Assembly: GCA_016748015.1 (NCBI GenBank)
Contig: JAAOMT010000648.1
Coordinates: 277,160 to 341,159 of the forward strand
Origin: Geosiphon pyriformis uo1
Lineage: Eukaryota > Fungi > Glomeromycota
Direction of reading: 5' to 3'
DNA length: 64,000 nucleotides
Positions 1 through 32,918 of this stretch are shown here, piece after piece. A program made the position numbers and the translations under genes. The stretch's first letter is position 1; every line of letters starts with the position of its first letter. The notes under the pieces were generated by a model. It did no database searches, was not told the DNA's origin, and saw nothing but the letters and a program-made list of their open reading frames with translations.

Positions 1-1131
1 CAAATTCAGCGAAATATCGGTTCCCTAGACGAGGTTGGCCAAACGTTACTGCTACCGCATGAACGCTATTAGGGTTACGGGTTCCCAAAGGGGATATTGT
101 ATGGTATTTTAGTTTAAATGCCAGCCCTGCAAGAACAGCATATGCTAATTTACAATTTGTAATTTATAAAAAGATTAATCATATTATTCTCAAAATTAAT
201 TATAATTTCTGAAATTAAATTTTTTTAATTGCTTACCCCCACCAATTCCATGTCCCACAAAGTGTAATCTTTCAGCAGAATACGGTGTTATACGATTAGC
301 GAATTTAACCATTTTCCAAATCTTTTCAAAAAGTCTTGGTTTCATTGTTTCGACGTCTTGAAGCCAACGTTCATCAACTAAATTCTTTGGATCCCACTTC
401 CACATTTTAGCGTTTTGTGGCTCAGGATATTGTGTCAGACATATCGTCCTCGTCTTCCATTGGTCCAGATTATAAATTGCACCTTTGAAAAATACAATTA
501 TATTTTTGGTTTTTTGGTCACGGAAAACGTCAGCTTTAGAAATATTTTTAGAAATATTAACTTTTTAGTCAATTTTTCATTATATTTTATTTTTTTTAAA
601 AAAAAAGGATAAAAGTTTAATATTATTCGAACCTTTGACTTCAGACCGTTTGAGGAGGGCTCCAATTTCATTATGAGAAGTACAATAAGCGTAACTGGTA
701 TCAATAGCAAATCTTGCTATCCTTTTGAAAGAAACACTATTTCGTGGTAAAAAATATTTTTTTGCAGGATCTGGATTTTCATGAAATATCTTTTGAAATA
801 GGTTTACATTCCGAATCCAAGGAAATAAGGTGGCATTGTTGATTCTTGGTATCCTTTTAGATAATTGATGAGAGGTATAACTCGTTGAAGATGGTTTAGA
901 ATGGGTAGGAAGGAAATTTAGAGTTGAAAATTTTGAGGGCTGTGATGCAGTATGGCTAAAAAATTTTTCTCCATAGGCCCTTTTTAAATTAACTATAAAA
1001 TTTTTATTGCTTTTAACTAAATTATTTTTTAAAAGTTGACCAATTGTAAAAGAAAGCGACAAAAAAATTGCAAGAAAAAACAATCTGGGTATTAATTTTG
1101 AGTTGAAAAGTGAGTGTGTTTTTGATGACAT
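1..1131 (-). CDS. L1: class 3 lipase-fold protein, Ser->Gly (GHGIGG); 3' end runs off the window start
   Basis: Exons 1131-633, 533-237 and 144-<1 with GT-AG introns. Motifs SYAYC, IIVFFKG, HFVGHGIGG|AYAVLA and VTFGQPRLGN. N-terminal hydrophobic segment. Confidence 0.88.
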
Positions 1132-3460
1132 TTTAAATTTGTTCGTAAAAATAAAAAAATTGGTTTTAATTTTTTTTGATGAACACTTTAATGATCCCCC
1201 CACCCTTTTTATTTATTTTTGAAAACGGAAAATGTATACTAGAATCTTTAAATGTTAAAAACAAATGAAAAATTTGATAAATTTAATCAGCGTAAATCTT
1301 GAGCAAATTTGTTAGCCGAATCATACCGGCCCCCTGAAGCTCCCAATTCATTATAAACAATGATATATGATTACTAAAAAAAGAGATGAAAGATTAATTA
1401 AAAACAAAAAAACATTGGTCATAAAATATTCCTGTAATTTTTTAAAATTTAGCAAAAGTTTTCTCCAATAAGCTAAATTTTTATTGGCATGTGTAAACTT
1501 TAAATTCCCAATTCTAAGTGTGTCCAATTTAGCATCATTCACTAACAGATGAGATTAATTGGTGTACAATTTTTACATTACTCATATTCGATAATATCAA
1601 AAAATTTTATTATTGTCTGACCGAACAAAACTTTTTTTAAGTGGTGGATCTCATTCTTAAATCAAATATATATTGCAAAGTTCAAATTTAGTAATTCTCA
1701 AATAATATAAAACTTAAATTTGTTTATTTAGATCTCCTTGGACAAAAAAACACGTGTAATAGTAAAATAGGATCATCTTCATTCACGAAATTATATAGTC
1801 ATCCCAAAAATTTTGTCATTCGGAAAGCTTATTCAGAGTTTACGTTTAGTTTACGGATTATCAAATTCCCAATCATATGAGTTTCCATTGAAATGTGAAA
1901 AGACAATTGGTTCTGAAATGAACTTTTATTTTGATCGAAATATTACTATATTTTAATGTTTTCTTCTGTGACTTTTTAATCAAGGAAAAATACTTGCCGT
2001 TTTAATTCGAGATTCTTTGAAAGTGGAAGAGTAATAGAAATTTGCAGATCATACAAATATTTTTTCAACTCAATGGTTGATTGAAATAGTGACAGATTTT
2101 ATTATTTTAGTTTGACGTCATGATTTATTGACATATTTTCATGAATCTATGTTTTAACCAGATCCATTTTCCCAAGATTTCTTGTATTAAATTTTAAAGG
2201 AACAAATCAAACTTAAAACTATTCATCAATCTCTTTTTAAGATTGTGTGAACTTTTTCGTTCATTCTTTAAATGATCTTCTAGATGACACGAAAAAACGT
2301 GTTGAAATTCATAAATTTATAAATCCTTTTTTTGATTGAAAAACAGTAATTAAGAAAACAAAGGTTCTTCAACAATAGTAAAAAACTGGGGAAAATGTTT
2401 TCAAAAATGAGATTTAGATTATCAGTGAAACTCGATGGTGGTCAATAATTTTATCCGTAATAAAAATTATTTCCGGAACTATGATCTCTAAAAATAATGA
2501 GTTTTACACATTGGGTTCTGATTTCATGACAAATAAAATCTATATTTTTTTTCATGAGCTTTGATATTAGACAACAAATTAGGTTTGGTCTAATATAATT
2601 TTGATACCTTTTTATTAATCTTCTTAGATTTTAACAAATTAAAAGCAAAATAATGTTTTTAAAATTATCTACATAAGCTTTGTTGAACTTTTTCAATTTT
2701 CTCTTTGGATTAATGAATATCAAATATATAAATTATATATATATTTAATTTTTATTTTTTAATTTATTCAAAAAATTTTTAAAAGAATTTTTAAATAAAA
2801 GAATTATTAATGAAAAATTATTTAATAATGAGAAAATATTTTTTTTTATTACTGTTTTGAAAATAACAATTTTTAAAATAAATTTGAATCAAAATAATTA
2901 TTATATTTTTTAAAATAAAATAAATTTTTATTTAAATTTAATTAAAACTTAAATAAAGGTTTTAAATTTTAATTTTAATTTAATCAAAAATTTTTTTAAA
3001 AAAATTAAATTTCAAATTTTTATTATGTAAATGTTTTTTTTTCTTTTAAAAAAATTGTTTTAATTAAGTGAAAATATTTCACTATCAACTTTAATGTTTT
3101 TATCAATTTTTAAATTTCAAATTAATTTAAATATGCAAATTAAGCATTAAAAATATTCAAATTAAACTCTTGAGTGATTACTGAACTGAATCGAATTGTG
3201 ATACATGAGAAAAATCTCTTATATTATTGGTCAGAAAATTTTTATAAATATTTTCCCAAACATGAATCTAAAGCAAAAAAATTGTTAGCATCAAAGCTCA
3301 TTACCAGATTAGCCTTAGGGAAAATTTTTAGAAAAATCTATTTTTTGCCATATATATACTTTTCTTGGAAATTGGGTTTGCTCTTGTTAAAAATTTATTT
3401 AAGCTTTACCTTTTTTTGAGGGGTACCAATAACCAGAAACAGAATCTTTTAAATTGAAAC

Positions 3461-4990
3461 TTAAAAAAATATCTTATATGGAGATCCTCTTTCCAAACTG
3501 CATTCCCCTATATTGATTCCAAAATAAGGCCCTTTGTGTGCTTTTAATTCTTCTTCGAGGGTACCCTTTTGACCTAAATTACATTGCTATTTTTAAAGGA
3601 TAAAAAACTTTAAATTAGACACCCAAAAATTCTGAATATTCTAAACCTAATCCAATACTAACCGGATTTTCAAAAAAGCCAGCAGGTTGAGGATATTCTC
3701 CATTGCAAAAATAAATCTGAAAATCTTCAGCGGACTCGACTGTTTTAATTTGACTTTTATATGAACAATCACAAGATTGATTTGGTATCCAAAACTCATT
3801 CCCACTATGTCCAAATATATCTTGATTCATGAAAAGCCTTGGAATAAAATCATTGCTATGAGTGATTCGGTGTAAATTCTGTTCAAATTTTGCGCTTGCA
3901 AGTTTTGCAAAGTCTTTGTTGCCCGTCCGTGGTTGTCCAAAAGTGAACACTGTGACAAGTATATCCACATCTAAATCATGAAATGTTGGGCCTTGTTGAT
4001 CATACTCCTCTTGCAAGGCTAAAGCGGCAATTACTGCATATGCTGGAAAAATGAGAAATAATGTTATTGAGGAAAAATGGAATTTGGAAATTTTAGCAAA
4101 GAAACATACCTCCACCGACACCATGACCGACAAATCTTACGTTTACATATGGAATGAAATCGTCCCATAAATGAGCAATACTATCACTCCAAGTTTTAAG
4201 TAGAGATCGAATCCTGTTGAAGAGTCTTGGTTTCATTTTTTTCACATCAGAACTCCAACTTTTATCAACTTTGGCTTTGGTTCCGATTTTATAATTTTTA
4301 AGGGAAATATTTCTTGCTTTCCATTTTTGTAATGTTAATTCTTGTCCTCGAAAGTATGCAACTATCTCTTTGTTTCGACTATCAAGAAACACATCGGCTG
4401 AAAGTTCAAAAAAATACATTTGAAAAAATAGAAATTTTTACAACTTTTTTTAATTTTCAAAATTTACACCTACCGACTACACCTTTTTGCTTAATTCCCA
4501 CTCGATTTTCATTGAAGCAATAAGCAAAATTAGCAGCCCTAGCCATTCTTGGAAATGGTTCCAAAACATATTGATTAATCACCAGGTATTTTTCTGGATA
4601 TCCATCTTTTAATGGTTTTGTAAATGTTGTTGATGATTTAGTTTGCCGTTTGAGCTTTGTTTTTGAGCCATGAAACTGATGAAAAGGTTCACTATTATTT
4701 AAATTTTGTGATTTACTTGACTTTGAGGTTGTGAATGAATAATTAAGTTGGCTAAAATTTTTATTTTCGTAGCTAACTCTATAATACATTAAGACTGAAT
4801 CATTAATAATAAACTTTGGTTCAACCTTTGCCATTAGAATCCCAAATTTGTTCAAGTAGATTGTGTAAAACACTAAGAATACCAAAAATAAGTAGATCAA
4901 AATTTCCAGAATATATTTGAGTAAATATCTACTTTCATACTTTCGCTGAGATGCAAGTAAATTTCTCTCTGATCTTGGCTCGTATCTCAT
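3461..4990 (-). CDS. L2: class 3 lipase-fold protein, Ser->Gly (GHGVGG), signal-anchored
   Basis: Exons 4990-4474, 4397-4110, 4042-3663 and 3586-3461. Motifs ANFAYC, VAYFRG, GHGVGG, FTFGQPRTGN, HSNDFIP, SCDC and AHKGPYFG...C. Confidence 0.9.
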
Positions 4991-5726
4991 CAGTTAAAAT
5001 TTTATTTATTTTACTTTGGGGTTTTCAAAAAATTGGTTCAATAAAACTTTTCAGACTCTATTTAAACACACATGAGATCCAATAAAATAAATATAAACAG
5101 ATTAATATTTTTTTTTGACGAACAAAAATTTAATAAAATTTATTTATACGGAGAAACCAAATTTTCTTTTCCTTAAAGTTATCCTATGTAGAAAGACTTT
5201 TTACTGTATATATCAGATTATTTTGAAATTAGTCGGGATTAATTATGATAACACGAAAAAATTTTAATATTTTATTAAAAAAATCAATAATTTAAGTTCA
5301 ATTTCCTTTTCATTTGAATTTTTTTGCGAGTTCCGAGTTTCCTCGCAAATCCAAAAGATCGATGTTTGCTTTTTTTTGAGAAAATTGTTTTCTAAAGTAC
5401 GAATTTGATGGCAAAACTTCTGGATTAGGGATTTGCAGGCAAAGATTTTATTGATATTGGGATATAATTTAGATTTTTATGATAAATATTAACTTGAATA
5501 GGAAAAGGAAGGTAAATAAAACAAAATTCCTTTGAAATTCAGAGTAATGAACTAGTATAGCAATCACCATAATTCTTACGAGTCATTACTATAATTAATA
5601 TATATATTCAATAAATCTTGTCCCACGGAAACTTTTAAATCGATATGTATTTTGAACATCTAGAGGAATCAATCTATTAGACTATTTCAAAGCAAACTAT
5701 ATCAACCATGAATGGATTAAATATTC

Positions 5727-5795
5727 TCCCCTTCTCCTTCTCCTTCCCCTTCCCCTTCCCCTTCCCCTTCCCCTTCCCCTTCCCCTTCCCCCCTT
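5727..5795. repeat. (CCCCTT)n / (CTCCTT)n pyrimidine hexamer tract
   Basis: Directly visible tandem hexamers. They generate the spurious GR-repeat ORF 5697-5906. Confidence 0.9.
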
Positions 5796-5996
5796 AAAAG
5801 CTTTAATAGATGCAAAATGTAAACTTTGATTTTTAATTTTTTTCGATTCATTATTTGAGCCAATAAATTTCATAGAGAAGCCTGAGCTGGTACTTCTTAC
5901 ACGCAATGGGATATATTAAATAGCCAGAATAGTTGTAACGTTTTTCAATCCATATCATTATAAAATAAAAATTTAAAGCTTAAATTATTCAGAATT

Positions 5997-7567
5997 CTAT
6001 AGATGAGGGCAAATCATCATATAACTAAAGTACGGCCCATAATGGTTTAATTTAGAGTCACCTTTCAAGTTGGGTACAGAATTATTGCAAAGCTTAGAAT
6101 AAAAAATTATTTGGAGAGTTAATTTAAGTTGTAACTTTAAAAGTGTTAAAAATTATAAAAAAGTTAATTACCGTGGATTCGTTTACACCAGAATTCAAGC
6201 TAATGTCTTTACACTCAAATACTTGATAAATCTCTGGACAGTCACATGAAAAAGAAATCCAGAACTCTGTTTCATAATGCACGTAACCTGCTCTTCCTTT
6301 CTTTTCAGGGAACTGAGATACGTAATCATCGGTATGCGTGACTCGATAAATTGTTCCAAGTTTATTCTTTACATGTTGAGCAAAAAAACTATTTCCAATT
6401 CGAGGGCTTCCAAATGTATACACCTTCACCTCAAATTCATGTGTAAAGCGAGGGATATATTGAAGTTCTAAAGCAGTAAATGTAGCATAAACTAGAAGAA
6501 TGACAGAGTAAAAATAAGCAGAATTTTTAGGGAAAATTTTTCAAAAAATTTTACAAATCAGAACTCAATATCAAATAGCTTTAAAAGAGGAGAAAACAAA
6601 ATTTATATATATATATTTATAATCCAAACCTCCAGCTATTCCATGCCCTATCAACGTAATCTTTTTGTGGCTGTACAATAAATCTTTAATTTTTTCTTTA
6701 ACTTTGTGTGATACATTTGAATAATCTTCCCAAAAATAGGCGTCAACTAATCCGAGTTCCAAATAAGGATAATTAACCATTTTTTGGGGTCTGCCTTCCC
6801 ATTGCATTTTGTTTAACTCCAATTCTTTAAAAAAAAATATAATTTCATCGGCAATCACCTCAGCTTTCCCTAGATAATTAATAAAACTTTTTTTTTTTAA
6901 TTTCATATTATTTGAAACTTTACAATAAAAACAATTTACCATATAATCCTTTCATCAACATGTCATCTGCACTTTCCAGGCAATAAGCTTTTTGTGCATA
7001 ACTGGCGTAAAATCGAAAATCCGCAATCAGTTTTTCATCAGTGACTAAATTTTTATACTGAGAATTTATATCTGTGATTCTATTATCCTTTAAATCATCT
7101 CCATAATCATATTTCGACCTTTTTTGCCACGAAATATTTTCAAAGGATCTTGTAATATTAGATGAAATGACTTTTTGGGAAAATCTTTGATGTTTATTTG
7201 TAAGTTCCTGAGGTTTTCTAAAGCTTTTGTTATCATTTTGCGATATGTTAAAATAAATTTTGAAAGGTTTTTTTTGAAATGTATTGGATATATTTTTTTT
7301 GAAATCCCTCAAAGGCTCTTGTTCTGCTTCAACATTTGAGGTGTCCCTTCTCGTATGAAAACCTGGTTTAAATTTTATTTCACCAGAATACCCAGAAGAA
7401 AACAGTATAAAGAGTAACCATCCTAAAATTAAACTTTTTAAGATAATAGGAAATTTTTTCCAAAATTGTTGCTTATACGAAAAAGATTCAAATATGAATT
7501 GCTTCCTATTTCGATTTGAAGCAGGGTGAGATTTTGTAAAATCCAAGCAAACAAAATGCTTATTCAT
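5997..7567 (-). CDS. L3: class 3 lipase-fold protein, Ser->Gly (GHGIAG), signal-anchored
   Basis: Exons 7567-6940, 6869-6630, 6491-6172 and 6092-5997. Motifs QKAYC, GHGIAG, YTFGSPRIGN, HTDDYV, SCDC and NHYGPYF. Confidence 0.9.
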
Positions 7568-8587: not shown

Positions 8588-8618
<31 letters not shown>

Positions 8619-9090
8619 ATTAATTAATCCCCTAATTTATCAAATTTTCAATAAAAATTATACATTCTTATTTTATATCTCAAAAAAAAATTTTAATTTT
8701 TAATCTTTATATATTTATAATTCATTTTTTTACAAAATAATTTTATATAAAATAAATTTACTTATTAATTTCAAAATCTCATTTCAAAGACATTTTCTGA
8801 ACATTTTTAGAATCTTTTTCATAAAGTAGACTTCAAAAATGTATTCATTATTTTATGATGAATTCTAATGAATTATATATATATATATATATATATTTTT
8901 TAATATACATATATTAATCATTTATTCAATTCACATTACAAAAAATCTTAACCTAACTAAGTAAGTTATGTTTTAGTAAAAATGGGATAAATGATTATTA
9001 GAAAGTAAAAGAGATATTTATTCAACCGCTAATAATATAATGATAAATGAGTGTCTTATCGTATGAATAAAGGCCCGAATATAAATCTCG

Positions 9091-9909: not shown

Positions 9910-11493
9910 TTAAAGGCAGTCACCCATGGTAACCCCAAAGTAAGTTCCTCGATGTTCTAAAAGACTTTTCTCCTCAGTCCCTGCCACCTGTCCAGCATTG
10001 CATTCCTTTAGAAAATTTTTGAAAAAAGTTAAAGATTAATTTTTCCTCATAACTTCTTCAATTTCACAGCTTAAACTTCTCACCGGATGTTCGCTCTCAA
10101 AATTTCCTTGCGCTTCCAATTCGGGGCATTCCCAAAGAATATGACCATTTAAAATCTCTGGGACCGTCTCGTCATCGTTATATTGAGGACAATTACAGTC
10201 AAACTTGGCCAACCAATATTCTCTTTGATGATGTCTCCAATCAATAGGAGATGAAACTCGAGGAATTGGGTCATTGGCGTGAGTTACACGATATACATTG
10301 AGAATTTTATTTACAAACTTTGCAAAAATTAAGTTTCCCATCCGAGGTTGGCCAAAAGTGATTGCTTCGACGAAGAGATTTGAAGCAGGAAAACTAGTAT
10401 CTCGTTTACGGAGTTCTTTTTCAAATTTTATAGCGGCTAATACTGCATAGGCTGTGAAAGGTGACAAGAAAAGTAAACTTTTACATTAAATAGCAGATTA
10501 AATTTATAACACAAATTATCATGATAATATAATTGAAATAATATTTACATCCTCCTATTCCATGTCCAGTAAATCTAATTGGTAAGACTATATTTGATCT
10601 TTTAAATGACTTCAAAAGTCGTAGAACTTTTTCCAAAATTTTTGGCCACATTTTTTCCACTGCTCCATTAACATAATAATCCAGTATTCTGTCTACATCT
10701 TCAAAGCTTACAGTTAAAGGTATAGCTTTTTGATCCCTGTCTATACTAGTGAATGGAGCCCCCTTGAAATATACAACTATTTCTTTGTTGGATGAATCCA
10801 CAAAAGCGTCAGCTTTAAATGATAATGAAGGGAATAAAAAATGAAATTTCATCAGTTTTTGAATTTCTTCCATTGTATCCCAGAAAATTTAAAACAATCG
10901 AACTTACCAACTACATTTTTTCCAGGCACAAGTTTTCCTATTGCATTGTTTTTTCGACAATAGCCAAAATTTGCATACGTTGCGAATTTGGCCAACATCG
11001 TGATAATATTAATATCTCGTACAATGGTCTTACCAGGATATTGTGAGCCAGAAGTTTGTAATTCTGAGGGAAGAAATTGAAAGTTTCTTTTCTTTTCTTT
11101 TTTGGAGGGTTCAATACTGTTCATATTATAATTTTCATTATTTTTTAACAAGCTTTTCTCACCTCTTTGGCTTTCATCATTTTCTTTACTTTGATTTCTT
11201 GTCACACGTGAATTAATGTCTACATTTAATTGAAGTGGTTGCTTGCGTTGATTCCAACTCTTCTGTTGCAACATTTTATTTTTCTCGGCTTCTATTAAAT
11301 TCACACTGTATTGTGAGGAAAAGATTAACGAACACAACCATATCGAAAATATTACAATAAAACAAATTGTAGGAATTAAAGTATGTTTCGGTGGGTTATC
11401 GATGAATTTTCTAGGTCGAGGATGCAAAGAAATTGGTTTCTGAAAATGTTTAGAGGCGAAAGTGTAATAATCAGAACCACGATTTTTTTTCAT
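9910..11493 (-). CDS. L4: class 3 lipase-fold protein, Ser->Gly (GHGIGG), signal-anchored
   Basis: Exons 11493-10908, 10812-10549, 10451-10084 and 10005-9910. Motifs NFGYC, VVYFKG, FTGHGIGG, ITFGQPRMGN, HANDPIP, DCNC and EHRGTYFG. Confidence 0.9.
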
Positions 11494-14570: not shown

Positions 14571-16146
14571 TCAGGGAATAAAAATACTGTTTGGCCAATA
14601 CTCGAAGTGACATTGTCCCATTTTAAAATTAAGGTATGGGCCAACATGTGGATGAACCGGATTTTCGTTTTCGGCATTTAGTCTAGAGCCAGATTGTGAT
14701 TGAACCGAATTGGCACAGCTCTATAAAAGTGATTGCGAGAAGCATATTATACAATCTTAATTAATATCATGTTATAATTATAAACAATTCTTAATCCGAA
14801 TAACTTTCCTCACTCTCAACTCCAGGACTAGTGTCACATTTGTACACCGTATTAGCTGAATCAGCAATCCAATATTCTAATTTATGATGTGTATACCTGG
14901 TCTCCGAATCGCTGGCCGGCATTTGTACAAATGGATCAATTGTATGTGTAAAGCGATATATTTTAAAGTTTTGAATATTATCAACGTATTCAGCAAATTC
15001 TTTGTTTCCAATCCTTGGCTCTCCAAATGTGGTGATTATTATTTGTTCGTCTTGAAATGTGGGAATATTTATCAGCGCTAGACCTGCAAGCACTGCATAG
15101 GCTATAAGGATAAAGATATTGAACTCATTTTGGAATTTAGAAGAAATCTCAATAAAACACTTTTTATGATGAGAGAAGTTTATTTATACCACCGCCGAGA
15201 CCATGTCCAGTCAAAACAAATTTCCATTCAGGTCTTATTTTTTTTATTCTCACAAGGTTTTTTAAAATCTTGACTTGAGCACCATTAAATCTTTGATACA
15301 AGCCAGCATGAACTTTTGCGAAAGAAGAAAATGCAGCAGTAGGAGGATAATCGATTTGGCGGGTATTTTTTTTAAATTCAATTGGATGTCTTTCAACACC
15401 GAGAAAATTGAAAATAATTCGTTTCTTTTGTGGTTCCAATTGAGCAGAACCTGGAATGGATTAAAAACGTTTAAGTTTTAGAATCAATTTCATTATTCCC
15501 AAAAATGCCAAATGACCCGAAATTTACCTAAGATATCATTTGAAAACTTGGAGGTTTGGTCATTTAATTTTAAGCAATATGCTAATGCAGCCCATCTAGC
15601 ATATTCTTCTAAACCTTTCAGTTCTTCTATTGGCACGAGTGTTTTCAAAGTGTCTGTTTCTTGTGTTGATTCTACGGCAAACAATGAATTTATTTTTCCT
15701 TGTATTTTATTTGAAGAGCCTGAGTTTTCAATCGAAAGATTTACTGGAAATGCAATATAGTTAGATTTGTTGTCATTTGTGTAATTTGAGCTTGTAAAAA
15801 TCTCATGAGGGTAGTAATTGTCAATCCTCGAGTTATCCAAATATGAAGGTTCTTCGTTGAACGAGGACATTAATGGGACCAAGGGATCTACTGCGGTCAT
15901 TTCTGTTTCGAGAGAACCAATAACAAAAATTAAAAAAAGCATTATTTTTTCAACTAAAAACGAGTTCTGTCCTTGCTCACCAACTAGAATATCTTGATCA
16001 TAATCATTATTCTCATTTGAAAACTGATCTAAAATTTGTCGCGTTAGCAATCGTTGAACAGGTTTAGCTTGAATCAGACATTCATTAAGTAGGCCAAGAA
16101 GCAATAAATAAAGGATGAAATGTTTCGAGCCCCGCTCTAGAATCAT
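14571..16146 (-). CDS. L6: secreted class 3 lipase-fold protein, Ser->Gly (GHGLGG)
   Basis: Signal peptide. Probable in-frame 78-nt intron at 15980-15903. Exons continue to 15528, then 15450-15190, 15101-~14809 and 14720-14571. Motifs ALAYC, KVHAGLY, TFGEPRIGN, TIDPFV and PHVGPYL. The last donor is ambiguous. Confidence 0.85.
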
Positions 16147-17296: not shown

Positions 17297-18984
17297 ATGC
17301 TCCATAATCTTTTGACAATCAAGGTGGCTTTATTATGCCCATTTATTGTAAAGCTTTTGCTCATTTTCCCATTACTAACAAGGGCAAGCCCAATTGCCGA
17401 AGAATATGCCGAGGAAACACAGAATTTACTTTCACAAAGTAATGGTTTCATGAATTCAGAATCGAATTTAATTTTACACGACATGAATCTCGATGAGTTG
17501 TCATCATTTGAAAAAAGCGAGAAAGATATCGTAGATTCAGATGAGATTGAAGCCTCTATTACATTACCAGAAGTTTCACAAGAGCAACAAAATTTAAACG
17601 AGAATCAAAACCTATTTGACGAGGTGGCTAAAAAATTCGATTCACTTAATCTAATTCCTGCTGAAGGAGGTTTAACTGATGAATTAAGGGAAGAAAGTGG
17701 CTCAAATATCGACGAGATAGTTTCATATTCAACGGAGGAACCAATATCAGGACCTTCCTTTGTTAATATAAAAAATGCTAAAACAAAAAAAGGGATGCTT
17801 GACCATGCGCGTGATTTCATTTTTGATGTGCTACATCATCGACAAGTTTTAAGCAAAAAAGATAAAAATATCAGCGATCTACAACTCTATGCAAAAGTTG
17901 CAAACGTTCCTTATTGCCAACCATATAACCGAATTTCAATAAGCTATTTCGGTTCGTTGAATCTAATCACTTTAAAAAGTTTACAAGTTCTAATTCTTTG
18001 AAAAATTTTTTCATTTCTAAGGAGCTGAGCAAACCAGACAATCAAATGTTAATGTCATCGTAGTGACCTTTGGAGCCCATAAAACAAGTTTACACGATTG
18101 GAAACGTGATAATGTCGTAATGAAAACTTTATATCCAGCTTACGTAACAGAAAAAGAATTTCATCGAAAAAATTTTTTCGACTGGAAAAACGAAATGGTT
18201 CATGGAGAAATGTATCGCGACTGGTGCCCCCATCAAAGAGATTTTTTAAACGAAATGAAGAAATTGGTTGAGAAATATCCTAACCATGGCATTCGGTTTG
18301 TTGGTCATGGATTAGGCGGAGGTTTGTCTCGTATTTTCTAACAAATTTATTGTCAAATTTAAGCTTTTTTAATCTTTTATTTTAAATTCTCTTCAAAGCA
18401 TACGCAATATTCGCGATGCTTGCGTTCATAATAAATTATCCAAAAAGTAGGGAAGTAGCGGCTTATACATTTGGCCAGCCACGTATTGGGAACCGAGCAT
18501 TTGCCCGATTTGTCAATGAAATGATATTTTTGAAAACAATAAAAGTTTATCGTGCCACTATATTAGGTGACCCAATTATTCTTTGGCCTGATACATCGAA
18601 TATGTCCGAAACTTCCCAAATAACGCCATTTCAACATCATGAAACGGAATTCTTTATCGATGAGGAAAACCAAGTGGTTCGTTGCCAGAGTGAAAATGAT
18701 GAGGGTACTGAAAACAAGGTAAATTTTCCAAACCATTAAATGAATTGTTTTAAAGCTATCAAGTTTTTAGCGAAAATTCAATATTGTAGAGTTGTTCTGC
18801 TGGTCATAATCAACAAAACACTGTAGATAAAAATACTGGTCCATATTTTAGCATTCCAATGGGAACTTGCATCGAGCCCCAGTCCATCATAATTCCGGAG
18901 ACTGGCCAAAATTTCATCAATCATTATTTTTATGTTGAATCTAGTGATTATAAACACAACATTTTACATAGAAGAAAGTATTAA
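17297..18984 (+). CDS. L7: secreted class 3 lipase-fold protein, Ser->Gly and His->Asn
   Basis: Exons 17297-17951, 18022-18321, 18399-18718 and 18790-18984. Signal peptide ending ...TRA-SP. Motifs GHGLGG, YTFGQPRIGN, LGDPII and KNTGPYF. Confidence 0.88.
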
Positions 18985-20520
18985 TTTTAGTAAAACAGGC
19001 ATGTTTTTTTTAGCTAGAAGGATATTTATCAAATTTAGAGAGTTCGATTTATGATAAAAACGCAATCATCAGACATGAAACCTTTTATCACTCAGAGAAA
19101 AAGTGCGGGAACTTTCTATATACCAAAGATTTTATAGGCTTAATTTTCGAAATTAATTCTGTTATTTAAAAGGCCAAAGTCATTAATTTTTTAATTCAAG
19201 CCTTCTTGTTGAATTTTTGCCAACAGGTCAGTTTTTGACTTCATATATTAATAATAAAAACACTATCTGGGATGTTGATAATTAATGTTTCACATTTAGA
19301 ATTTCTCGGAATATTCTACTTATTACCTGTGAAACATATTTCAATACAATACATGTAATTTGAATTTGTTTTATTATTATAATTTCCGTAAAATCATTTT
19401 GATATATTGCCAAAAAGAAAAATCTTTATCACACATATTTTTATAAAGTTGAGGATTAATGTTCAAATCTATAATCTTTCTGTGTAAAATAAGAGGCCAA
19501 TTTTTTATTCACAAAATTATCTAAAGGTGATTGATATTGATTCAAAAATAAAATACTTTGAAGCAAATTCCTTTCCTAATGAGAACTCTTTTTAAATGTT
19601 GGCTTGCTTTCTTCCATCTTTTTCTCTATTCATTGAAAAGTGTCATTTTTTACTTTTTAGCAAATTTCATTAGTTTCATTTGTCATCATTGAATCAATTG
19701 ATCTGTTGTTAAAAGCTCTCTAATTTAAAATCATAATTTTAAACTTTATTTTCACTTGTTAATTTTATGCTAACCTATATTTACATATGTTACTCATTGA
19801 GAGCTTTGTTTTAATATTATTAAAATTTATTAATTTTTATTTAACTCAATTTACTGGAAAAAAACAAGTTTTAATACTTTAGGTTTTAGGATAAAGTTAA
19901 ATATTAAAATCATTCAAATATTATCATTGAAATGATTTTATCCTTAAGAATTTGCTTTTTTGCATTTCAGTTTCTGAAGATAAAGGTTTTAAATTTTGTT
20001 TCTACTTGTACTCATATGAGCAGACTTGGAGTCTCTTATTTCTTGAAGAATTTTCTACAAATTTGGTAATATTATTATTAAAACATTTTTCCGTTGAGAA
20101 TTTTTATTTGAATGAAAATTTAAAGATAGACTTTCTTTCAAAGAAACGAAATCTTTTAAAAAGAACATTTTGCTCGTATTAAAGTTATGTCAATTTCCCA
20201 ACAGAAATTTGCAATATTCTTTTTTATATTATTATTATTATTATTATATATAAAAAGTCATCTAATTCAAATGATTTAATATTCATTATTTTCGGAAATT
20301 TATTTTAAAAGTTTCAAACAATTATAAGAGGGTGTTCATATTCTAATCCGAAATGAGTTTTTATAATTTTTCCGATTAAAATATTAGACCCTAAAAGCGA
20401 ACTTATCGAATCCCAACAAGTATAAAACCAAAAAAGCTTTAAGCTTTTGGAGGGAAAAACTTTTTAATTGAAATTTCCTTTTCATATAAATACCAGCTAG
20501 TCGAAAACTGAATTTTCCCC

Positions 20521-22291
20521 ATGAAGTGTTTAAATATTAATAATTTGCTAAATTTCCAAAAAAAGCCAAGAGTTTCAATAACAGAAACGTTTCATGCACT
20601 GACCTTAGTTTCTTTCATATTATTTACGTTTTCTTTGAGTTACCTTGTCACTTTCGCATATTCTTCACCTCTTTTAACAAATAACAACTATGATAATCAA
20701 AGACGACAAATAATGAACCTAAATTTTGATTCTGAATTTCAAGATCCACTTTTAGCTTCTTCAAGCGAAACAGAATTCAATGAAAATTCTCAACAGTTGG
20801 AAACAATAGATTCTTTAACTTCTCAGTCTGAATTATCGAATAATCAAATTAAGCCTCAGGAGTTTAGTTCGAATCTTTTAGGAACTGAACAGGGAGAGTC
20901 GATAGATATGCAAGTACCTGATTTATTCGCAACAGCTGATATAAATAATAACCCTGCAAGTGGCTTACGTGAGTTATGCTGTAATGTTTTTATAATTTAA
21001 AGTTAATTCTCTTGACCATTAATACCTTTCAACTTTCAATTGAAAGAAACATCAATCGATCAAGATGTGTTCGATAACGGAGGGTCTAATCCAACAAAAG
21101 TTTCTTTCGAATTCGGAAAATGGACTGAAGAGCACGTGAAAGATGTTAATTTCGTTTCAGGGAGCGATGCGGTTGAAGACAATTTAGCGTTATATGCTCG
21201 AATGGCAAATACGGCTTATTGTTTCAAAGAAAAAGTCTCTGCAAGATATTTTGGTAGGTCATGACTTTTCTTTACCATTTAGTTTTTGACATTTTTTTTT
21301 AACGCAGAAAATGGAATCAACTATTTCCATTAGATTTTGTTTTTTCTCAAGTTTGGACTAAATTTCCCCTATCTTCTTTCGTCCTTAGTCAATGAAAATT
21401 TTAACTTTCGGTCTCTCGTAACAGTTTTTAGCGGGCTCGAATCTGACTTGCATGAATACCAGAGTACAACCAAAATTGATATAACTACATATCCCGAGAA
21501 TAACTTGCTAAAAGAACTTGAATTTCGTTCAAATGTTTGGTCAGATGGATCAAAGAATCCACATGTTCACACTGAAATTTATCGTAATTGGTTGAATTAC
21601 CAACCAGAATTTTTGAACCAAATGAAAATAATGGTTTCAGATAATAAATATGCCGTATTTCGGTTTGCTGGGCATGGATTAGGTGGTGGTATGTTGTGTT
21701 TAATTGTGAGCTTGATCTTGGGATCTTTTGGTAAATGTATTTTAATAATTTAAACGTTTAAAATATTTGTCGCAGCATATGCAATCTTTGCTACACTCAC
21801 ATTTATGGCAAATTACCCAAATAATGACGTGAATACTTACACCTACGGAGAACCACGTATTGGTAATAGAGAATTCGCAAAATTTGTTAATACCCTAATA
21901 ACTAAGAAGATGTTATATGTATATCGGGCGACAAAAATCAATGACCCAGTTGTTCTCTGGCCCAATATTCCTCTATCATCAAGAGGGGATATTTTGCCCA
22001 ATCCACCATTTTCTCATCATTCTACCGAATATTTTCAGGATGAGAACAATCGTGTTATGAAATGTAACCGAGGGGAGCAAGTCTTGGAAAATAAGGTTTA
22101 ATTCATTTTACTAAAGGAATAACTTGAAATTTAGAGATTGTGAAAAATCTTTCGATAATTTTTATTCATGCAAATATTTTTTTCCTTCATAGAATTGTGC
22201 AGCAGGCAGGAGATCTGCTTTCAACGATCATAACGGGAAATATTTCGGTGTTAAGATGGGTGAATGTGTGGAGTTTAATATTGGTAACTAA
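20521..22291 (+). CDS. L8: class 3 lipase-fold protein, Ser->Gly (GHGLGG), acidic propeptide
   Basis: Exons 20521-20968, 21047-21253, 21389-21688, 21776-22095 and 22193-22291. Motifs ANTAYC, YTYGEPRIGN, INDPVV and DHNGKYFG. Confidence 0.87.
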
Positions 22292-22693
22292 TTTCAAATT
22301 CTCATAAACTATTTAATAAACGAGTTTCTGTAGAAATTAAATTTTTTTCCATATTCTTCACGTTTTAGGATCAGCTTCAGACCCGCTTACTTTCGTAAAA
22401 TGAAACTATTTCAACATAAGATTATTTGGAAAGTAAAATGAGATATTAGAAGAAAGTCAGGAAAATTTTTAGCATTGAAAAAAAAGAACCGGTGATTTTG
22501 TTTTTATTAAGAGAGATATCAATAAAAAGCGTGTTTATACAAAAATTAGTGGGGAATAAAACATGTTTCAATTTATAATTAAATTGGAATAGGAAATACA
22601 TGTGATTTTCCTTTAAATATGTAAATTTTTTACGTTTTCATGGGAGTTTAGAGATTTTGATTGATTTTTATATCTTGAACATTGAACTTGAAT

Positions 22694-24336
22694 ATGCATC
22701 TTTTTATTCTCGATTTTTCATCTTTCAGATTACCATCATTGAGCTGTAAGGCTTTGATGTTATTTTTTTGGTTATTTTACGTATCATTTCCAATAGCAGA
22801 TTCAAATCCGATTTTGTTTGGAAGCGAGCTTACATTTGAGAATGAAAAAAAAATGCCATATCAAATGTCAGCAGGATCTGACATTTCCCCTTCTAGGAAA
22901 GATTATATTCCGTTTGCTAAACCAACTATAAAATCATCGAATAGTATTCTCGGCAATATTATTATTTCCCCAGATCTTGAAAGACAATCGGAGGATGAGA
23001 ATACTTTGAACCCAAATATCGACATAGCTCAGTCCCAATTTAATGAAGCATCGGGAATTTTGGGAAGAACTCATTTAGCTCCAAATCTTGACAATACATT
23101 CCAAGAAATAAATCTTTACGCTGAAAATAATAAAATTCAAGAATTTGATATTGAAAGTGAACTTCTTGAAAATATTAAAGAATCTATGAATCTTCGTCGA
23201 CGAATTTCTTCCGAAAATTCTCTTATCGCAGATTTCAGGAAATATGCACGATTCGCAAAATTTGCATATTGTATTTCGGAAAATTCTGCGGCATATCTTG
23301 GTAGAATCAAAATACTTTTCCTTTCCCAACGTTGAAAAAATGTTTTTTTTCATATATAAAAAATTCCTGCGAGAATTTTTGCTAATCGTTTTTCTAACTT
23401 TGCATTTTCAAATAGTGTCAAAAAAAGCAGAAAAAAACTCAATAATCGTAACATTTCACGGTTTAGAACAGGATTTAAAAGATTACATGTCAAAAAACAT
23501 CACCAATTTTGAATCATATCATGTATACGATGACATAAAATTTCATGACAAGTTTTCATACTCATGGCAAGAGCAAAAAGTACACATGAAAATATATGCG
23601 ACTTGGAGAGGAATACAAGATCAATTTTTGACACAAATTAAGGAGATTATAAATCTATATCCCGATTACCCTATTAATTTGACCGGTCATAGTTTGGGTG
23701 GAGGCAAGATCTCTGAATATTTCTTGCATAACAATTTTTAATTCATTAAAAGTTGAAAGATTCCGATTTTATTATTATTATTATTATTATTATTAGCTTT
23801 CGCCATATTTGCATCCCTCGCTCTCGTTGAAAATTTTTCAAATCATCTTCAAGTTACAGTTTACACCTATGGTCAACCGCGATTAGGCAATGATGCTTTT
23901 GCAGCCTACGTCAATACTCTAATGACCAGACGTAAAATAGAAATATTTCGTATAACAAGAGCAGATGATCCAGTGGTTCAGTGGCCACAATTACCAAAAG
24001 CTACTGAAAAAGGAGCAAAAATATTTCAATTCAATAGGAATGAAAATGATAATTCAATTTTTAGGCATCACGGCAATGAATATTGGCTTACAGAGAGTGA
24101 AACAGTTTATGAATGTTGGATGAGTAATGGTGGGGATGAAAATCCGGTTTGTGTTTTTTGGATTTAGGCCTTATTTAAAAGTTAAAATGTTTTAAATTGG
24201 ATATTTTTCTTTTTAAACCTTCTAGAATTGTGCGAATGGTCAAATCCCAGGTCCTTTCTATAAACATCAGCTTCAATATTTCGAGATAAGGATAGATCAG
24301 TGTGAAAATTTCAAGAAACTTGAGTTGAACCAATGA
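22694..24336 (+). CDS. L9: secreted class 3 lipase with intact triad (GHSLGG)
   Basis: Exons 22694-23300, 23416-23703 (GC donor), 23797-24146 and 24226-24336. Ser codon AGT at 23691-23693. Motifs YTYGQPRLGN, ADDPVV and KHQLQYF. Confidence 0.88.
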
Positions 24337-24988
24337 CCTACGCATAAAACTTTTTATTTAAGTTTTTAAAAATCAAACTTATATAATGGTATTGTATATT
24401 ATATTTAACCCAATTTATAAGATAAAAGAAACTACGTCACGAAAATTTACTAATAAATTTTCCTAAACATTTTTTAAATTAGAATCCTTAATATCAATCA
24501 AAGACAGGATTCAAGAAAGTACCCAAGGCTTTTTTTTCCAGTTTGCGAATAAAAAAGTATCAATTGCTTCTTTTAGTTTCAGTTAATATCTAATTTGTTT
24601 TACAACATTTTTTAATAACATAAATAGGCTAAAAAATTTCAAAAATATTATAATTTTTTCCGATAAATATATGATATTTTTTCTTTTTTAAAAATTCTTT
24701 TCTCAATGCTCCAGAAATAAATGAAAGAATTTATTTGTCTGGTTAAAAATAATTCAAAGCTAATATTTAATAGCACATCTTGAATTGGGTCAGCGTTTTT
24801 TTAAATCAGATAAAAAATCTCTGCCTTCAAAAACCATTATTTTAAATTTATCATTACCTAGCATTGATGAGAGACTATTATTCAAGCAATCTATAGATAA
24901 TCAGAGCTGTGTCATTTTAAAATAATTGACATGTCATTACAAACTTTTGTATGTATGTCGGTTTAATGGTGGAAAATGAAAATCAATT

Positions 24989-26987
24989 CTAATGATAACC
25001 ATTATTTGGTACTTCCTTTGGTGGTTCTTTTTTACGAAAGATAGATGGTAATTTGATGTTTTGAACCGGCGCTACATCTAGTGGCAACTTAATTTCAACA
25101 CATTTTCCCATTTTTACTTTGAAATATGGTCCCGTATGGTTAGCAAAACTTTTAGCGTCTCGACCAGTTGCTGCGCAGCTCTAAAGGAACAAAGAATAAA
25201 ATTTAACCGATACGAGAGTGTCTCAAAACAATAAATCTTAGCAAAACTGTTTATTTGAAAAGGCTTTTTTAAAGGTCACGAACCTCATTTTCCAATCCAT
25301 TATCTTCCGGTCTACATTCAAATGTGTTGTTGCCATCCGACCAGAATTCACTTTTGTGATGGAGAAAGGGAGGCGCATCTACAATTCCTGTAAATCTATT
25401 AGGCTCTTCAGAATTCGAACTAAGAGGTGGCCAGTGTATCATGGGATCTTGAGCAACTGTAGCACGGAATATTGTAAATCGACCAATATCGATTACAGCC
25501 GAAATAAAGTTTCCAAAATCACCATTGCCAATACGTGGTTGACCATAGGTGAAGATACCAAAATCACGGCGTCCCGATGATCTAATCACAAATGCTATTG
25601 CGGCAAAAACTGCGTATGCTACAGACAAAGAAGAGATTTACCAAAAAAGAAATAGTTGATGATTTTCTAAGTAAACTTGTAAAATTTTTCACATACCCCC
25701 ACCAAGTCCATGTCCGACAAATCGGATAGGCGAATTTGGATTTTGATTAGCGAGTGGTTCAAATGTATTGAAGAATTTCTCTTGATAACCCATCCAGTTT
25801 GTATAAATTTGTTTATGAACCTTTTCTCTCTTCCATCCATTTGAATACCATCTTTTATGAAAAGTTTTCTCCTTATCAATAACAGGATAACTCATTTGAT
25901 CGACTATCCCCTTTTTCATGTAATCTTCTAGCTCAGTCTCTAATCCGGCAAACGCCACAACAACAATTTTTTTTTTATTTTTTCGTCCCAATGCATTCGC
26001 TGGAATTAAAAAGATTAATCAATAATGTCTTGAAAGGAAAAAGAATTAAAGGAAAAAAGAAAATTCTTCTTACTATAAAACCGAGTTGAAATTTTTTCTT
26101 TTTTGCAATAAGCGGCGTTGGCCATATGTGCATATAATTTGAGATTAATAATTTTTGGATCATTTGGAAGAAGATAGGTTCTTTTTAACATGAAGTTCTG
26201 TGAAGGGTCTGTTTCACCACCTTCCATTCCACCTTCTCCATCACCACCTGGGATTCCATCACCACCTGGGATTCCACCGCCGCCTGGAAATCCACCACCG
26301 CCTGGAAATCCACCGCCACCTGGAAATCCACCACCACCTGGAAATCCACCTGGGAATTGAGCGAGAATTTTTTCATCAGATTGGGTATTTTTAGCTGAAA
26401 TTGACGTTTGGGGGTATGCGTCCTCAAGATTTAAATTCAGTTGTGATTCTTCGTCATTTTCATTTATATCTATTTATCAAATGACCTGAAGTTATTTAGT
26501 TTTGAAATCAATGTTCGGCTATGAGCTCACAATGTTATCAAACAAAACTGAAAATGGTATTACCAAAATTTGTGTCGAGATTACTAGATGCTGTAAATTC
26601 GAATGGATTTGATGATGATGATGATGTTTCTTCGATAAATTTAGAATTAATGTATGGCTGCGAGTCCATCGAGCCTTGATCGTACAATTCTCCATGGTTA
26701 AAATCACCTGCTGCGGGGAGAGCACTTTGATATTCTATAGGTATGGATTCCAAATCATTGAAGTCAAGTTCATTTTCATTTAATTGGCGTTTTTCGGTTT
26801 TAAATCTGGCCATTTCGTTTGGCTCTTTTCCCCAAAATGAGTAATTTGCGAGAAAATAGCCAAAAAATGTGACTAAAATCAGAAAGGAAATCTTTTGTTT
26901 TAAAGACCATTTGGCCCGATTCCAGTGATTATTTAATGCTGGAGATGAGGAAAAAACTAATGAAAGGGGTATCGACTCAGTTGGCAT
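24989..26987 (-). CDS. L10: class 3 lipase-fold protein, Ser->Gly (GHGLGG), with FPGGGG-repeat propeptide
   Basis: Exons 26987-26564, 26469-26074, 25999-25697, 25618-25284 and 25180-24989. Motifs ANAAYC, KVHKQIY, FTYGQPRIGN, AQDPMI and NHTGPYF. Confidence 0.87.
26235..26357 (-). repeat. 18-bp coding tandem repeat encoding FPGG(FPGGGG)4(IPGGDG)2
   Basis: Repeated CCACCGCCTGGAAAT-type units on the + strand, in frame within L10 exon 2. Confidence 0.85.
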
Positions 26988-29900: not shown

Positions 29901-30135
29901 TTTTCAAAATCATAAATAAGAAACTCATCATTTCTATATGAGTTATTTGTTTATTATTTATATTAGAATGAGACATTATCAAGTTCTTCAAAGGTCTCAT
30001 GATAAGTGAAAAGATATTCATATTCAGGTAACAGATCATATCTGAAATTCAAAAAGTTCATTTCCTAAAATCATAATTACCAAGACTATATTTGGTCCCC
30101 TTTCCTAAAACCAAAAAAAAAATTTTTTTTGTGAG

Positions 30136-30795
30136 ATGAAAATGATTGGTGGCAATAAAGCCTTCCTTTTATGGTTCAAAACCACTATTGTCACTCATTA
30201 TATGAAATTTTCGATGAAATATCACCTACACTTGAATCCTTTCAAAATATTATCACTTTCTTTTTTTCTTTTACCCTTGATTCTTCTTTACTTTAACATG
30301 TTAAGTTTCCATGAAATTGCTCCCATTTTTGAAACTCCAAATTTGATACGGAATCTCGAAGTCATACCCAAATCTTTTCAGAAACGGCAGACAAAATTAG
30401 TTTTTCCAGAGATAAGGTTTAAAGCTTTGAACCGAATTGAGAATTCATTCTATATTAAGGGTAATCCTACTTGGTCTAAACAAACAAATGCAGAGTCTTC
30501 TTCATCTGTACCAAAAGAAACTGAGAAACAAAACCCTGAACAAACAAATTCAGTGTCTTCTTCGTCTGTACCAAAAGAAACTGAGAAACAAAACCCTGAA
30601 CAAACAAATTCAGTGTCTTCTTCGTCTGTACCAAAAGAAACTGGGAAACAAAACCCTCCTAATGGACAGTCATTAAAAGACCCCTCAAATAACTATTCTC
30701 ATCCTCATTCTCATAAAACTCAAAACCCAGATAAAAATAACCTTGTAATTGATTGTGACTGCCAAAATAAGCTACAGCGAAGCTTAAAACTTTAA
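30136..30795 (+). CDS. Signal-anchored protein with 20-aa tandem repeat; possible truncated derivative of the lipase family
   Basis: 219-aa ORF with a hydrophobic segment, a KRQ site, SSSSVPKETEKQNPEQTNSV repeats and a terminal DCDC motif. No lipase core is visible. Confidence 0.55.
   Translation: MKMIGGNKAFLLWFKTTIVTHYMKFSMKYHLHLNPFKILSLSFFLLPLILLYFNMLSFHEIAPIFETPNLIRNLEVIPKSFQKRQTKLVFPEIRFKALNRIENSFYIKGNPTWSKQTNAESSSSVPKETEKQNPEQTNSVSSSSVPKETEKQNPEQTNSVSSSSVPKETGKQNPPNGQSLKDPSNNYSHPHSHKTQNPDKNNLVIDCDCQNKLQRSLKL
30481..30657 (+). repeat. 60-bp tandem repeat, about 3 copies
   Basis: The lines starting at 30481, 30541 and 30601 are near-identical. Confidence 0.95.
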
Positions 30796-31434
30796 ATTAT
30801 TCTAATTTTTTTGAAATGGAAATAATAACTAAATGGAAATGATTTCTCAGATGGCAAAGCTGGTGGTTTCTAAACTCAAACTTTATAAATTCTAGAGATT
30901 GTCCCGTCAATTTTAAAGCATAATATAGTTTATATTCAAAAAAATGGTTGCATAATTCAAAAATATTAATATTTTTTATGATATTAAAATATAATTTTCC
31001 AATTTCATATTTGACATATTCAGAATATGTAATAAAAAGACCTTATAACTTAAAGAAATCCCTTTCATTTAGAGCGTTACTATTTTTTAATATTTTTTAA
31101 TGAATAAGAAAAAATTCATTCATTTTTAAAATAAAGTTTCTTTGAAATAAAAATTTTAATTTTAATTCACTATGTCAAATAGTACAGTTTTCTATGAAAA
31201 AATTATTTCTAATTTATATATACATTTACATGTATTTTCAATTATGCTCAAAGATATATTTGAAATGGTTAAATGGGGATTGCAATCGTCGGGAAAACCT
31301 TTTTTTTATTTTTTTTGTTATTGATGTCTGAATTGATAAACACGTGAAATCTTTTTAAGACATTGAATTTTTTCAAAATGTCCCCACTGCAATAGCAGCC
31401 CTTTGGTCAAAAGAGAAAGCTATTCAAGTCACCC

Positions 31435-32918
31435 ATGAAAGTCTTGTTGAAATGCGAAAAATGTATCTGGATATTTATCTTAATTACCACGGTGTTCGAT
31501 AAATTTACAATATATTGCCAAAAAATTTCTTCCTCCTCCTTAATAAACCAAAAGACGCACTCTAAAAGGAATAATTCAAACTTGGAAATTCTACCAATAA
31601 ATTTTATTCCCGTTTTAAAAAGTGAACATTTAAAATATGAAAAGTTTCCTTTATACGTTCGTGAAAATAAATTATTGATCCTGGCAACTCAAGGATTTGG
31701 CAAATACACAAAATCATCACCGCCAAAAATCATAGTCAAAGATCCCGAAATTATAACTTTATTCACATCAATGGCACAAATGGCTAACATTCCATTTTGT
31801 AAAAACAGTGATACGATGACTATAAAGGAAAAGGGAATTATAGGTAATTAATTTTTGTTTTGATTAAATTAAATTTTTATCATTAATTGCGATGCTTATG
31901 TTTATGTTCAAAACACGATTTTCTTTTTTAAGGTAACATTATTTCAGTAGAAAAATCTGGAAAAATTTTTGGGTACTTTCGAGGTATAGCTTTTCTTTGA
32001 ATTTTTGATTCTTTCAAGATATAAAACTATCCTAAAACGAAATTTCTTTACCCAAGGTCCAGAAATGAATGCAAAGGAATGGGCTCGAAGAAAATCAGAT
32101 TTTATGAAATTTAATATCGCTCCGAAAGGCTGGTCAGTGGATAATACCTGGGCAAAACCATTTTTAGCATTAGACGGCCCATTTGCTACAATTTTATCAA
32201 AAATTATTCACTACTGTGAGCAGATGAAAAAAGTTGAACCAGAGATATATTTAACAGGTCATGGAATTGGAGGAGGTGAATTTTTATTGCAAATTGAATT
32301 TAAAATTTCGAATCTGGTAATATATATATATATATTACCTTTTCATTCAATTTTGTAGTCTATGCTCTTTATGTTGGAATACTATTGCACGGTTCAAGGT
32401 CAATATTTGAAAAAACGATCCCAGGTCAAACTCGGCACTTGACGATTGTTACCTTTGGACAACCAAGACCAGGAAATGAAAAGCTAGCGCAATTCATTCA
32501 ATTCAAAAAGAAAAATTTTAAAGTTTACAGAGTAACTAATAAGGACGATATGGTACCTCACTATCCCATAAAATCTTCTCAGGGAAAACGATACTCTCAT
32601 GTTGGGAGCGAGTATTGGATTAGTGATATTAGTTGCGATTGTTCAACAAAAAACCCAAAGACAAAGGATTCCTTGTCATTTGCTCTTTACGAGTGTCCAA
32701 GTGTCTTTTCAGAGGATTCAGATGGTGTTGGAGAAAATATGGTAATTTATAAAGAAACTTTCAAAAAGGGTTAATAAATTCTGATATCAAAATTTTTTTT
32801 AAATTTTTAGAATTGCAATCTAGGAACACTTGGGACAAGTACTTCCACACACTATGGTCCCTATTTTGGAACTACATTTGGAAGATGTGAAGATTATCAA
32901 CCAAAAATTGGTGAATAA
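31435..32918 (+). CDS. L11: class 3 lipase-fold protein, Ser->Gly (GHGIGG)
   Basis: Exons 31435-31843, 31933-31983, 32057-32275, 32359-32741 and 32811-32918. Motifs ANIPFC, GYFRG, VTFGQPRPGN, KDDMVP, SCDC and THYGPYFG. Confidence 0.88.

Follow-up and report, generated by a model that had tools for sequence, protein, structure and literature searches.

Serine-less class 3 lipase-fold genes in a tandem array of Geosiphon pyriformis belong to a large family of intact copies

Results

Eleven lipase-fold genes at the end of a contig

The window considered here is a 64,000-nucleotide stretch of DNA that forms the end of one 341-kb contig (C590:277160-341159) in the 128-Mb assembly of the fungus Geosiphon pyriformis. 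It carries a tandem array of genes with the fold of the fungal class 3 lipases, most of which lack the nucleophile serine (Ser). Stop-to-stop frames gave 11 genes, L1 to L11, of which ten are complete and one, L1, is truncated at the window start (Table 1). At the elbow that carries the nucleophile, Ser is found only in L5 and L9; the other nine genes read GHG, with glycine (Gly) codons that are all GGA or GGT, each on the strand of its own gene. In these nine copies the residue that follows Gly is isoleucine, valine or leucine, and hence they contain no shifted nucleophile. The catalytic aspartate (Asp), aligned with its position in Rhizopus lipase, is present in 10 of 10 complete genes, and the catalytic histidine (His) in nine of them, L7 reading K-N-T-G-P-Y-F at that site. 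From its sequence, L9, with Ser, Asp and His all in place, is likely the active lipase of the window.

The genes share their architecture. An intron donor lies directly after the elbow in 10 of the 11 genes (GT, with GC in L9); L3 fell outside the scan pattern, and its best junction is also in phase 1, one residue earlier, immediately after GHGIAG. The last exon, which bears the catalytic His, follows a phase-0 intron and opens with x-C-(N/A/S). The two intron positions that were checked are common to all ten complete genes, which are open over approximately 400-550 codons each with intact splice sites. At the composition of the window, random stops arise at a rate of 0.084 per codon, or about one every 12 codons; ten open genes of this length with intact splice sites are not the product of decay.

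The array does not end with the window. Upstream, at C590:242000-273500 (loci L008-L011), nine further family genes extend it, with the elbows GHAVGG, GHGDGG, GHGSGG, GHGIGG (three times), GHGLGG, GHSLGG and GHGVAG; two of these copies have Asp or Ser one position past the lost nucleophile. With 60 kb of upstream sequence read, the whole array comprises 20 genes over approximately 68 kb, of which 16 have Gly, one alanine and three Ser at the elbow. An earlier note on this DNA, made from its letters alone, had listed the nine Gly codons and had described open complete genes with shared intron positions, conserved cysteines, Asp in all and His in nine, and a divergence too strong for recent decay. 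Direct reading of the elbows and junctions and the alignments described below bear out each of these points. Likewise, the 11 genes of its tandem array are real, but the array is larger and continues past the window edge, and what it took for a special 11-gene system is instead the local piece of a family of approximately 300 genes.

In the public annotation, the closest proteins carry names that begin with "hypothetical protein G9A89_" (Geosiphon pyriformis). L2 and L3 are fused there into one model of 559 amino acids (P0007), and L7, L8 and L9 into another of 1286 (P0006); for L10, no public model is among the best 150 profile matches listed. With its models fused and labelled hypothetical, the family is easy to miss. 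A search for RNA runs over positions 18400-24399 of the window listed none.

The domain is that of the fungal class 3 lipases

For the Pfam and profile searches, single exons were given by reference, and full-length work used the public protein models. Exons matched Lipase_3 (PF01764) with up to 52.7 bits against a cut-off of 22; by the same cut-off, the public spliced models of L4 and L11 scored 70.1 and 57.4 bits and the L7-L9 fusion 216. Lipase_3 was the only Pfam domain in L4 and L11, and both proteins stop within approximately 30 residues of the His, with no C-terminal EP domain. A 49-member family profile matched Rhizopus lipase (6A0W) over the whole domain with an expectation value (E) of 1.5e-43, a match that spans the A-Y-C helix, the FRG strand, the elbow, the PRxGN motif, the Asp and the H-x-x-Y-F-G...C end. 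The elbow Gly aligned with the nucleophile Ser of both 6A0W and 1DT3, and the Gly of a family member with Ser146 of Thermomyces lanuginosus lipase, its Asp falling on the lipase Asp of the T-H-T-N-D motif.

The structure predicted for L4 agrees with this assignment. An AlphaFold2 model of its public protein (P0041), built with the 49-member alignment, had a predicted local distance difference test (pLDDT) score of 80.4 and a predicted template modeling (pTM) score of 0.81. Foldseek placed the Rhizomucor miehei lipase-propeptide complex first (E 3.6e-14), followed by Rhizopus lipase, feruloyl esterase A and Thermomyces lipase, with EDS1 and PAD4 far below; the top matches 6QPP, 6A0W, 1USW and 3TGL had E of 1e-14 to 1e-11 and template modeling scores of 0.6-0.72, normalized to the target. 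Both the Lipase_3 search and the comparison with R. miehei lipase had been proposed as checks in the earlier note, and both came out in favor of the fold. Look-alikes of L4 in the ESM Atlas were generic Lipase_3 clusters only, and a metagenome search with L4 alone found no relative.

A family of hundreds of copies

A genome-wide tally of elbow motifs, likewise suggested in that note, was made against a reversed-pattern control. Over the whole genome, GHGxGG was matched 329 times (control 30), GHAxGG 42 times (control 4) and GHSxGG 63 times (control 11). Given the excess of GHGxGG over its control, and a probability of 1.6e-4 that a random frame of this composition stays open for 100 codons, chance is excluded as the source of these matches. 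The control-corrected counts correspond to approximately 300 serine-less copies and approximately 50 with Ser, and the Lipase_3 profile run on the genome returned 783 first-look candidates.

We sampled the family with a profile of ten exon-3 pieces searched against 1.84 billion representatives, which gave 5824 matches at E up to 0.001. From the best 150 of these 5824 proteins, together with two cluster members, 151 usable domains were obtained. Their nucleophile position is occupied by Gly in 104, Ser in 29, alanine in 5, Asp in 5, arginine in 4, phenylalanine in 2, and asparagine and cysteine in one each. The catalytic Asp is kept in 148 of the 151 domains and in 103 of the 104 with Gly; of these Gly domains, 85 extend into the last exon, and 78 of the 85 keep the His. 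Almost no variation is seen in the cysteines aligned with the lipase disulfides, and the Geosiphon copies typically add a CxC pair. Some members outside the window read GHGSGG, GHGDGG or GHGEGG, that is, with Ser, Asp or glutamate one position later.

All 22 serine-less proteins whose source was looked up are from Geosiphon, and all seven named relatives from elsewhere keep Ser (two from Panaeolus and one each from Neoconidiobolus, Monosporascus, a chytrid, Planoprotostelium and a fly). Three further Ser-type relatives, with metagenome contigs among their sources, are uninformative on glomeromycetes. Among relatives of known source, the serine-less forms are thus confined to Geosiphon.

A second lipase His, in a VHxGF motif upstream of the elbow (family alignment column 138), is mostly Asp in the Gly copies. 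In raw counts it is present in 20 of 29 Ser domains and 15 of 122 non-Ser domains; within the window, for example, L2, L3 and L11 have Asp there and L6-L10 have His. We considered a link between this residue and the nucleophile and set it aside: the tree offers just four independent pairs, too few to separate such a link from shared ancestry. A separate, intron-poor group of Lipase_3 genes with GHSLGAA elbows and acidic tails was found at C716:382300-384700 and C551:44000-46200 (loci L001 and L002); with the other family motifs missing in the single frame read, this subfamily clearly falls outside the serine-less expansion as judged by its motifs.

Selection and the history of the nucleophile position

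The copies of the array are old. Their exon-3 identity has a median of 35%, and the proportion of synonymous differences (pS) is 0.72, which is saturated, against a proportion of nonsynonymous differences (pN) of 0.45; within the window, where pairwise synonymous divergence (dS) is saturated, only the comparison of pN with pS is meaningful. The ratio of nonsynonymous to synonymous divergence (dN/dS), calculated from joined codon alignments of exons 2 and 3, is approximately 0.2-0.4 for the closest pairs of the array, and so is not near 1, the value that the earlier note had proposed looking for. This is an old and intact class 3 lipase-fold family that lacks the nucleophile and is kept by selection, with its core under long-term purifying selection, and it has grown by tandem birth-and-death.

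A younger array lies at C378:4000-71000 (loci L014-L021), where seven GHGVGG paralogues accompany one Ser copy (GHSIGG, P0061). The seven are roughly 70-95% identical across exons 2-3, with pairwise dN/dS of 0.38-1.06. By region, dN/dS is approximately 0.3-0.5 around the core formed by the elbow and PRxGN and approximately 1-1.4 in the lid and the next helix, in keeping with a scaffold that stays fixed and a surface that changes fast.

In the tree of the 151 domains, the well-supported branches require at least seven changes that involve Gly. L2, L4 and L11 belong to one large serine-less clade and L7 and L8 to another, to which the Ser copy L9 is sister; hence, the window holds the products of at least two independent losses. 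A clade of 37 Gly and two alanine copies encloses the Ser copy P0061, whose codon is AGT. An approximately unbiased (AU) test rejects a tree that unites these 39 serine-less copies without it (p 0.0011), for a group defined post hoc from the tree. The nesting points to reversion of Gly to Ser, to gene conversion or to loss several times in parallel.

N-termini, stalks and lipid context

All 11 N-termini contain a hydrophobic 19-residue window with a mean Kyte-Doolittle value of 1.66-2.55, in most cases preceded by basic residues, and 53-71% of the segment that follows is polar. Two of these stalks include tandem repeats, of GGFPGG type in L10 (26200-26400, minus strand) and as three 20-residue units, SSSSVPKETEKQNPEQTNSV, in L11 (30400-30680, plus strand). 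Judged by hydropathy, such a protein would be stalked and either secreted or held by a type II anchor. The earlier note had assigned a signal peptide or signal anchor to every copy; the hydrophobic window is indeed there in 11 of 11, but the assignment is one of hydropathy, and the public models of L4, L5 and L11 begin downstream of the hydrophobic N-terminus.

The same note had pointed out that arbuscular mycorrhizal fungi are fatty-acid auxotrophs. Geosiphon, which houses the cyanobacterium Nostoc, is a glomeromycete, although it does not count as an arbuscular mycorrhizal fungus sensu stricto. The genome supports this background: the fungal type I fatty acid synthase domains PF08354 and PF18325 found no match in the genome, in which acetyl-CoA carboxylase was found with E 9e-276. 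The missing matches fit a dependence on lipids, as in the mycorrhizal relatives.

Other features of the window

Beyond the array, two short frames have signal-peptide-like starts (MKN..., hydrophobic, SWS) and polar tails rich in serine, proline and threonine; neither has a Pfam match or a lipase exon downstream, and they may encode small secreted proteins or represent first exons of the family left without the rest of their gene. The remaining features, a BTB/POZ gene, a frame related at its start to ARS-binding protein 2 and two strongly AT-rich segments, are given in Table 1.

Table 1. Genes of the array and other features of the window (positions counted from its first nucleotide; P numbers are public protein models)
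Feature	Position	Strand	Elbow	Gly codon	Description
L1	1..1131	-	GHGIGG	247-249	Cut by window start; N-terminal hydrophobic anchor
L2	3461..4990	-	GHGVGG	4120-4122	Complete; Asp and His kept; fused with L3 in P0007
L3	5997..7567	-	GHGIAG	6640-6642	Complete; Asp and His kept; fused with L2 in P0007
L4	9910..11493	-	GHGIGG	10559-10561	Complete; Asp and His kept; P0041, N-terminus shortened; structure predicted
L5	12185..13891	+	GWSLGG		Complete; Ser present, tryptophan replaces the usual preceding His; Asp and His kept; P0025
L6	14571..16146	-	GHGLGG	15200-15202	Complete; Asp and His kept; P0028, without the last (His) exon
L7	17297..18984	+	GHGLGG	18309-18311	Complete; Asp kept, His lost (KNTGPYF); part of fused P0006
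L8	20521..22291	+	GHGLGG	21676-21678	Complete; Asp and His kept; part of P0006
L9	22694..24336	+	GHSLGG		Complete; full Ser-Asp-His triad; GC donor after elbow; part of P0006
L10	24989..26987	-	GHGLGG	25707-25709	Complete; Asp and His kept; Gly/Pro-rich repeat in stalk exon
L11	30136..32918	+	GHGIGG	32263-32265	Complete; Asp and His kept; three tandem 20-residue stalk repeats; P0030
Short frame	35960-36307	+			115 amino acids; signal-peptide-like start
Short frame	37772-38263	+			163 amino acids; signal-peptide-like start
BTB/POZ gene	44740-45471	+			No introns (Pfam E 3.9e-16)
AT-rich segments	46000-50000, 56000-58000				GC content 13-16%, against 28-32% across genes
ARS-binding protein 2-like frame	61941-63272	-			443 amino acids; start matches the end of the family (Pfam E 2.7e-7), remainder Ser/Pro-rich

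Discussion

What might such proteins do? We lean toward the view that the Gly copies are non-hydrolytic binding proteins, displayed at the surface or secreted, that use the lipase scaffold and hold a lipid-like ligand in the old cleft. In this scheme, each protein would begin with a signal peptide or anchor, continue through a variable, polar and partly repetitive stalk of approximately 100-200 residues and end in a disulfide-bonded lipase domain in which Gly has replaced the nucleophile and Asp and His have been retained. The hydrophobic N-termini and the cysteines of the lipase disulfides would put the proteins at the fungal surface or outside the cell. There, an acyl lipid or other hydrophobic ligand would be held in the former active-site cleft rather than cut, and the fast-changing lid region could give the many copies different specificities. 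With no detectable type I fatty acid synthase, capture or sensing of lipids at the interface with Nostoc would be the most natural use.

Several observations weigh against this reading, among them the search for RNA runs that listed none. Near-invariant Asp and His are unnecessary for simple binding and could indicate residual chemistry. The signal sequences have hydropathy as their support, and three of the public models start beyond the hydrophobic stretch. Finally, the dN/dS near 1 in the youngest pairs of the C378 array is also compatible with relaxed constraint immediately after duplication.

It is possible, although rather unlikely in our judgment, that the fold serves as a scaffold for contacts with proteins or glycans instead of lipid, so that the Gly copies would be surface recognition or adhesion molecules, or partners or regulators of the few Ser paralogues in the same arrays. 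An anchor, a stalk and a globular head are a build for surface display; tandem birth-and-death and the rapid change of the lid and following helix resemble what is seen in recognition families; and the 20-gene array mixes three Ser copies among 17 that are serine-less. However, the most constant residues (the elbow, Asp, His and PRxGN) line the old active site and not an outer surface.

Somewhat more doubtful is the idea that the Gly copies are enzymes still, either because the His-Asp pair activates water or a group on the substrate or because another residue has become the nucleophile. The retention of Asp and His in Gly domains (103 of 104 and 78 of 85, as given above) would be readily explained, and cofactor-free dioxygenases of the alpha/beta-hydrolase fold do use a His-Asp dyad. 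The GHGSGG, GHGDGG and GHGEGG elbows of some members outside the window also offer candidate nucleophiles. Yet a hydrophobic residue follows Gly in the nine window copies, and the residue after the nucleophile normally faces away from the cleft. Furthermore, arginine, phenylalanine and asparagine also occur at the nucleophile position, which fits a loss of catalysis and not a new mechanism.

Decay of the Gly copies into pseudogenes after the tandem duplication of a lipase is very improbable. In its favor are the lost catalytic residue, the search for RNA runs that listed none and a dN/dS close to 1 for two of the young C378 pairs, but this reading is already contradicted by the ten long open genes with intact splice sites and by a pN far under a saturated pS, and the structural and triad residues are near-invariant over the 104 Gly domains.

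Returning to lipid binding on a lipase scaffold, a bolder version of that proposal invites speculation, and we rate its chances as slim. The family could be a reversible store of lipase folds, made up of hundreds of lid-diversified surface receptors or carriers of lipid, a few of them turned back into active lipases. At the Nostoc symbiosome, the whole set would help a fungus unable to make its own fatty acids to capture lipid or to recognize its partner. Asp and His would then be kept because the switch between Gly and Ser requires a single transition (GGT/AGT). The Ser copy P0061, with its AGT codon inside the 39-member serine-less clade, is a first hint in this direction.

It is also worth considering what these genes could mean for the biology of Geosiphon. 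The reuse of dead enzymes as binders is known, usually for one or a few genes; a single fungus with approximately 300 serine-less copies has devoted a noticeable share of its genes to them. Outside the Geosiphon genome paper, which our search did not include, we found no description in the literature of serine-less lipases in Geosiphon or other Glomeromycotina. No other fungus is known to take up cyanobacteria into its cells, and Geosiphon is closely related to mycorrhizal fungi that live on the lipids of their hosts. For these reasons, the uptake or sensing of lipid, or the recognition of the partner, in the Nostoc symbiosis is an obvious role to propose for a presumed surface family with a lipase cleft, and the window supplies concrete genes with which to study it.

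It is informative to set the family beside known systems. The secreted class 3 lipases of Mucoromycota and Ascomycota, typified by those of Rhizomucor miehei, Rhizopus and Thermomyces lanuginosus, belong to the same Pfam family and have the same fold, and they share with the Geosiphon proteins an N-terminal helix ending in A-Y-C, the FRG strand, the G-H-x-L-G-G frame, PRxGN, the Asp and His, and the disulfide cysteines. In contrast to these enzymes, the Geosiphon copies of the window have Gly for Ser in nine of 11 cases; a hydrophobic N-terminus and a long polar stalk stand in place of a short propeptide, approximately 20 residues fewer follow A-Y-C, a CxC pair is added, and the copies number in the hundreds rather than a handful.

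The plant proteins EDS1, PAD4 and SAG101 are also of this Pfam family and act without hydrolysis, and their sequence and fold matches to the Geosiphon family are weak but real. They reside in the cytosol or nucleus and carry an EP domain at the C-terminus, and Ser is retained in EDS1 and PAD4. The Geosiphon proteins, in contrast, end just after the lipase domain, with Lipase_3 as the only Pfam match in L4 and L11.

Another parallel is offered by the neuroligins and other cholinesterase-like adhesion molecules, in which an alpha/beta-hydrolase fold has exchanged Ser for Gly, is displayed on a surface stalk and acts by binding. They differ from the Geosiphon family in that they belong to the type B carboxylesterases, are animal proteins, have a C-terminal anchor and are encoded by few genes, and we found no sequence relation between the two.

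Catalysis has been lost, too, in the RALPHs, the RNase-like effector candidates of Blumeria graminis. Like the Geosiphon family, with its predicted secretion, they form a very large, lineage-specific and secreted family that is built on the fold of an enzyme and belongs to an obligately symbiotic or biotrophic organism (PMC6464244). RALPHs are small, have another fold and come from a plant pathogen, and what they share with the serine-less lipases of Geosiphon is a pattern of evolution only.

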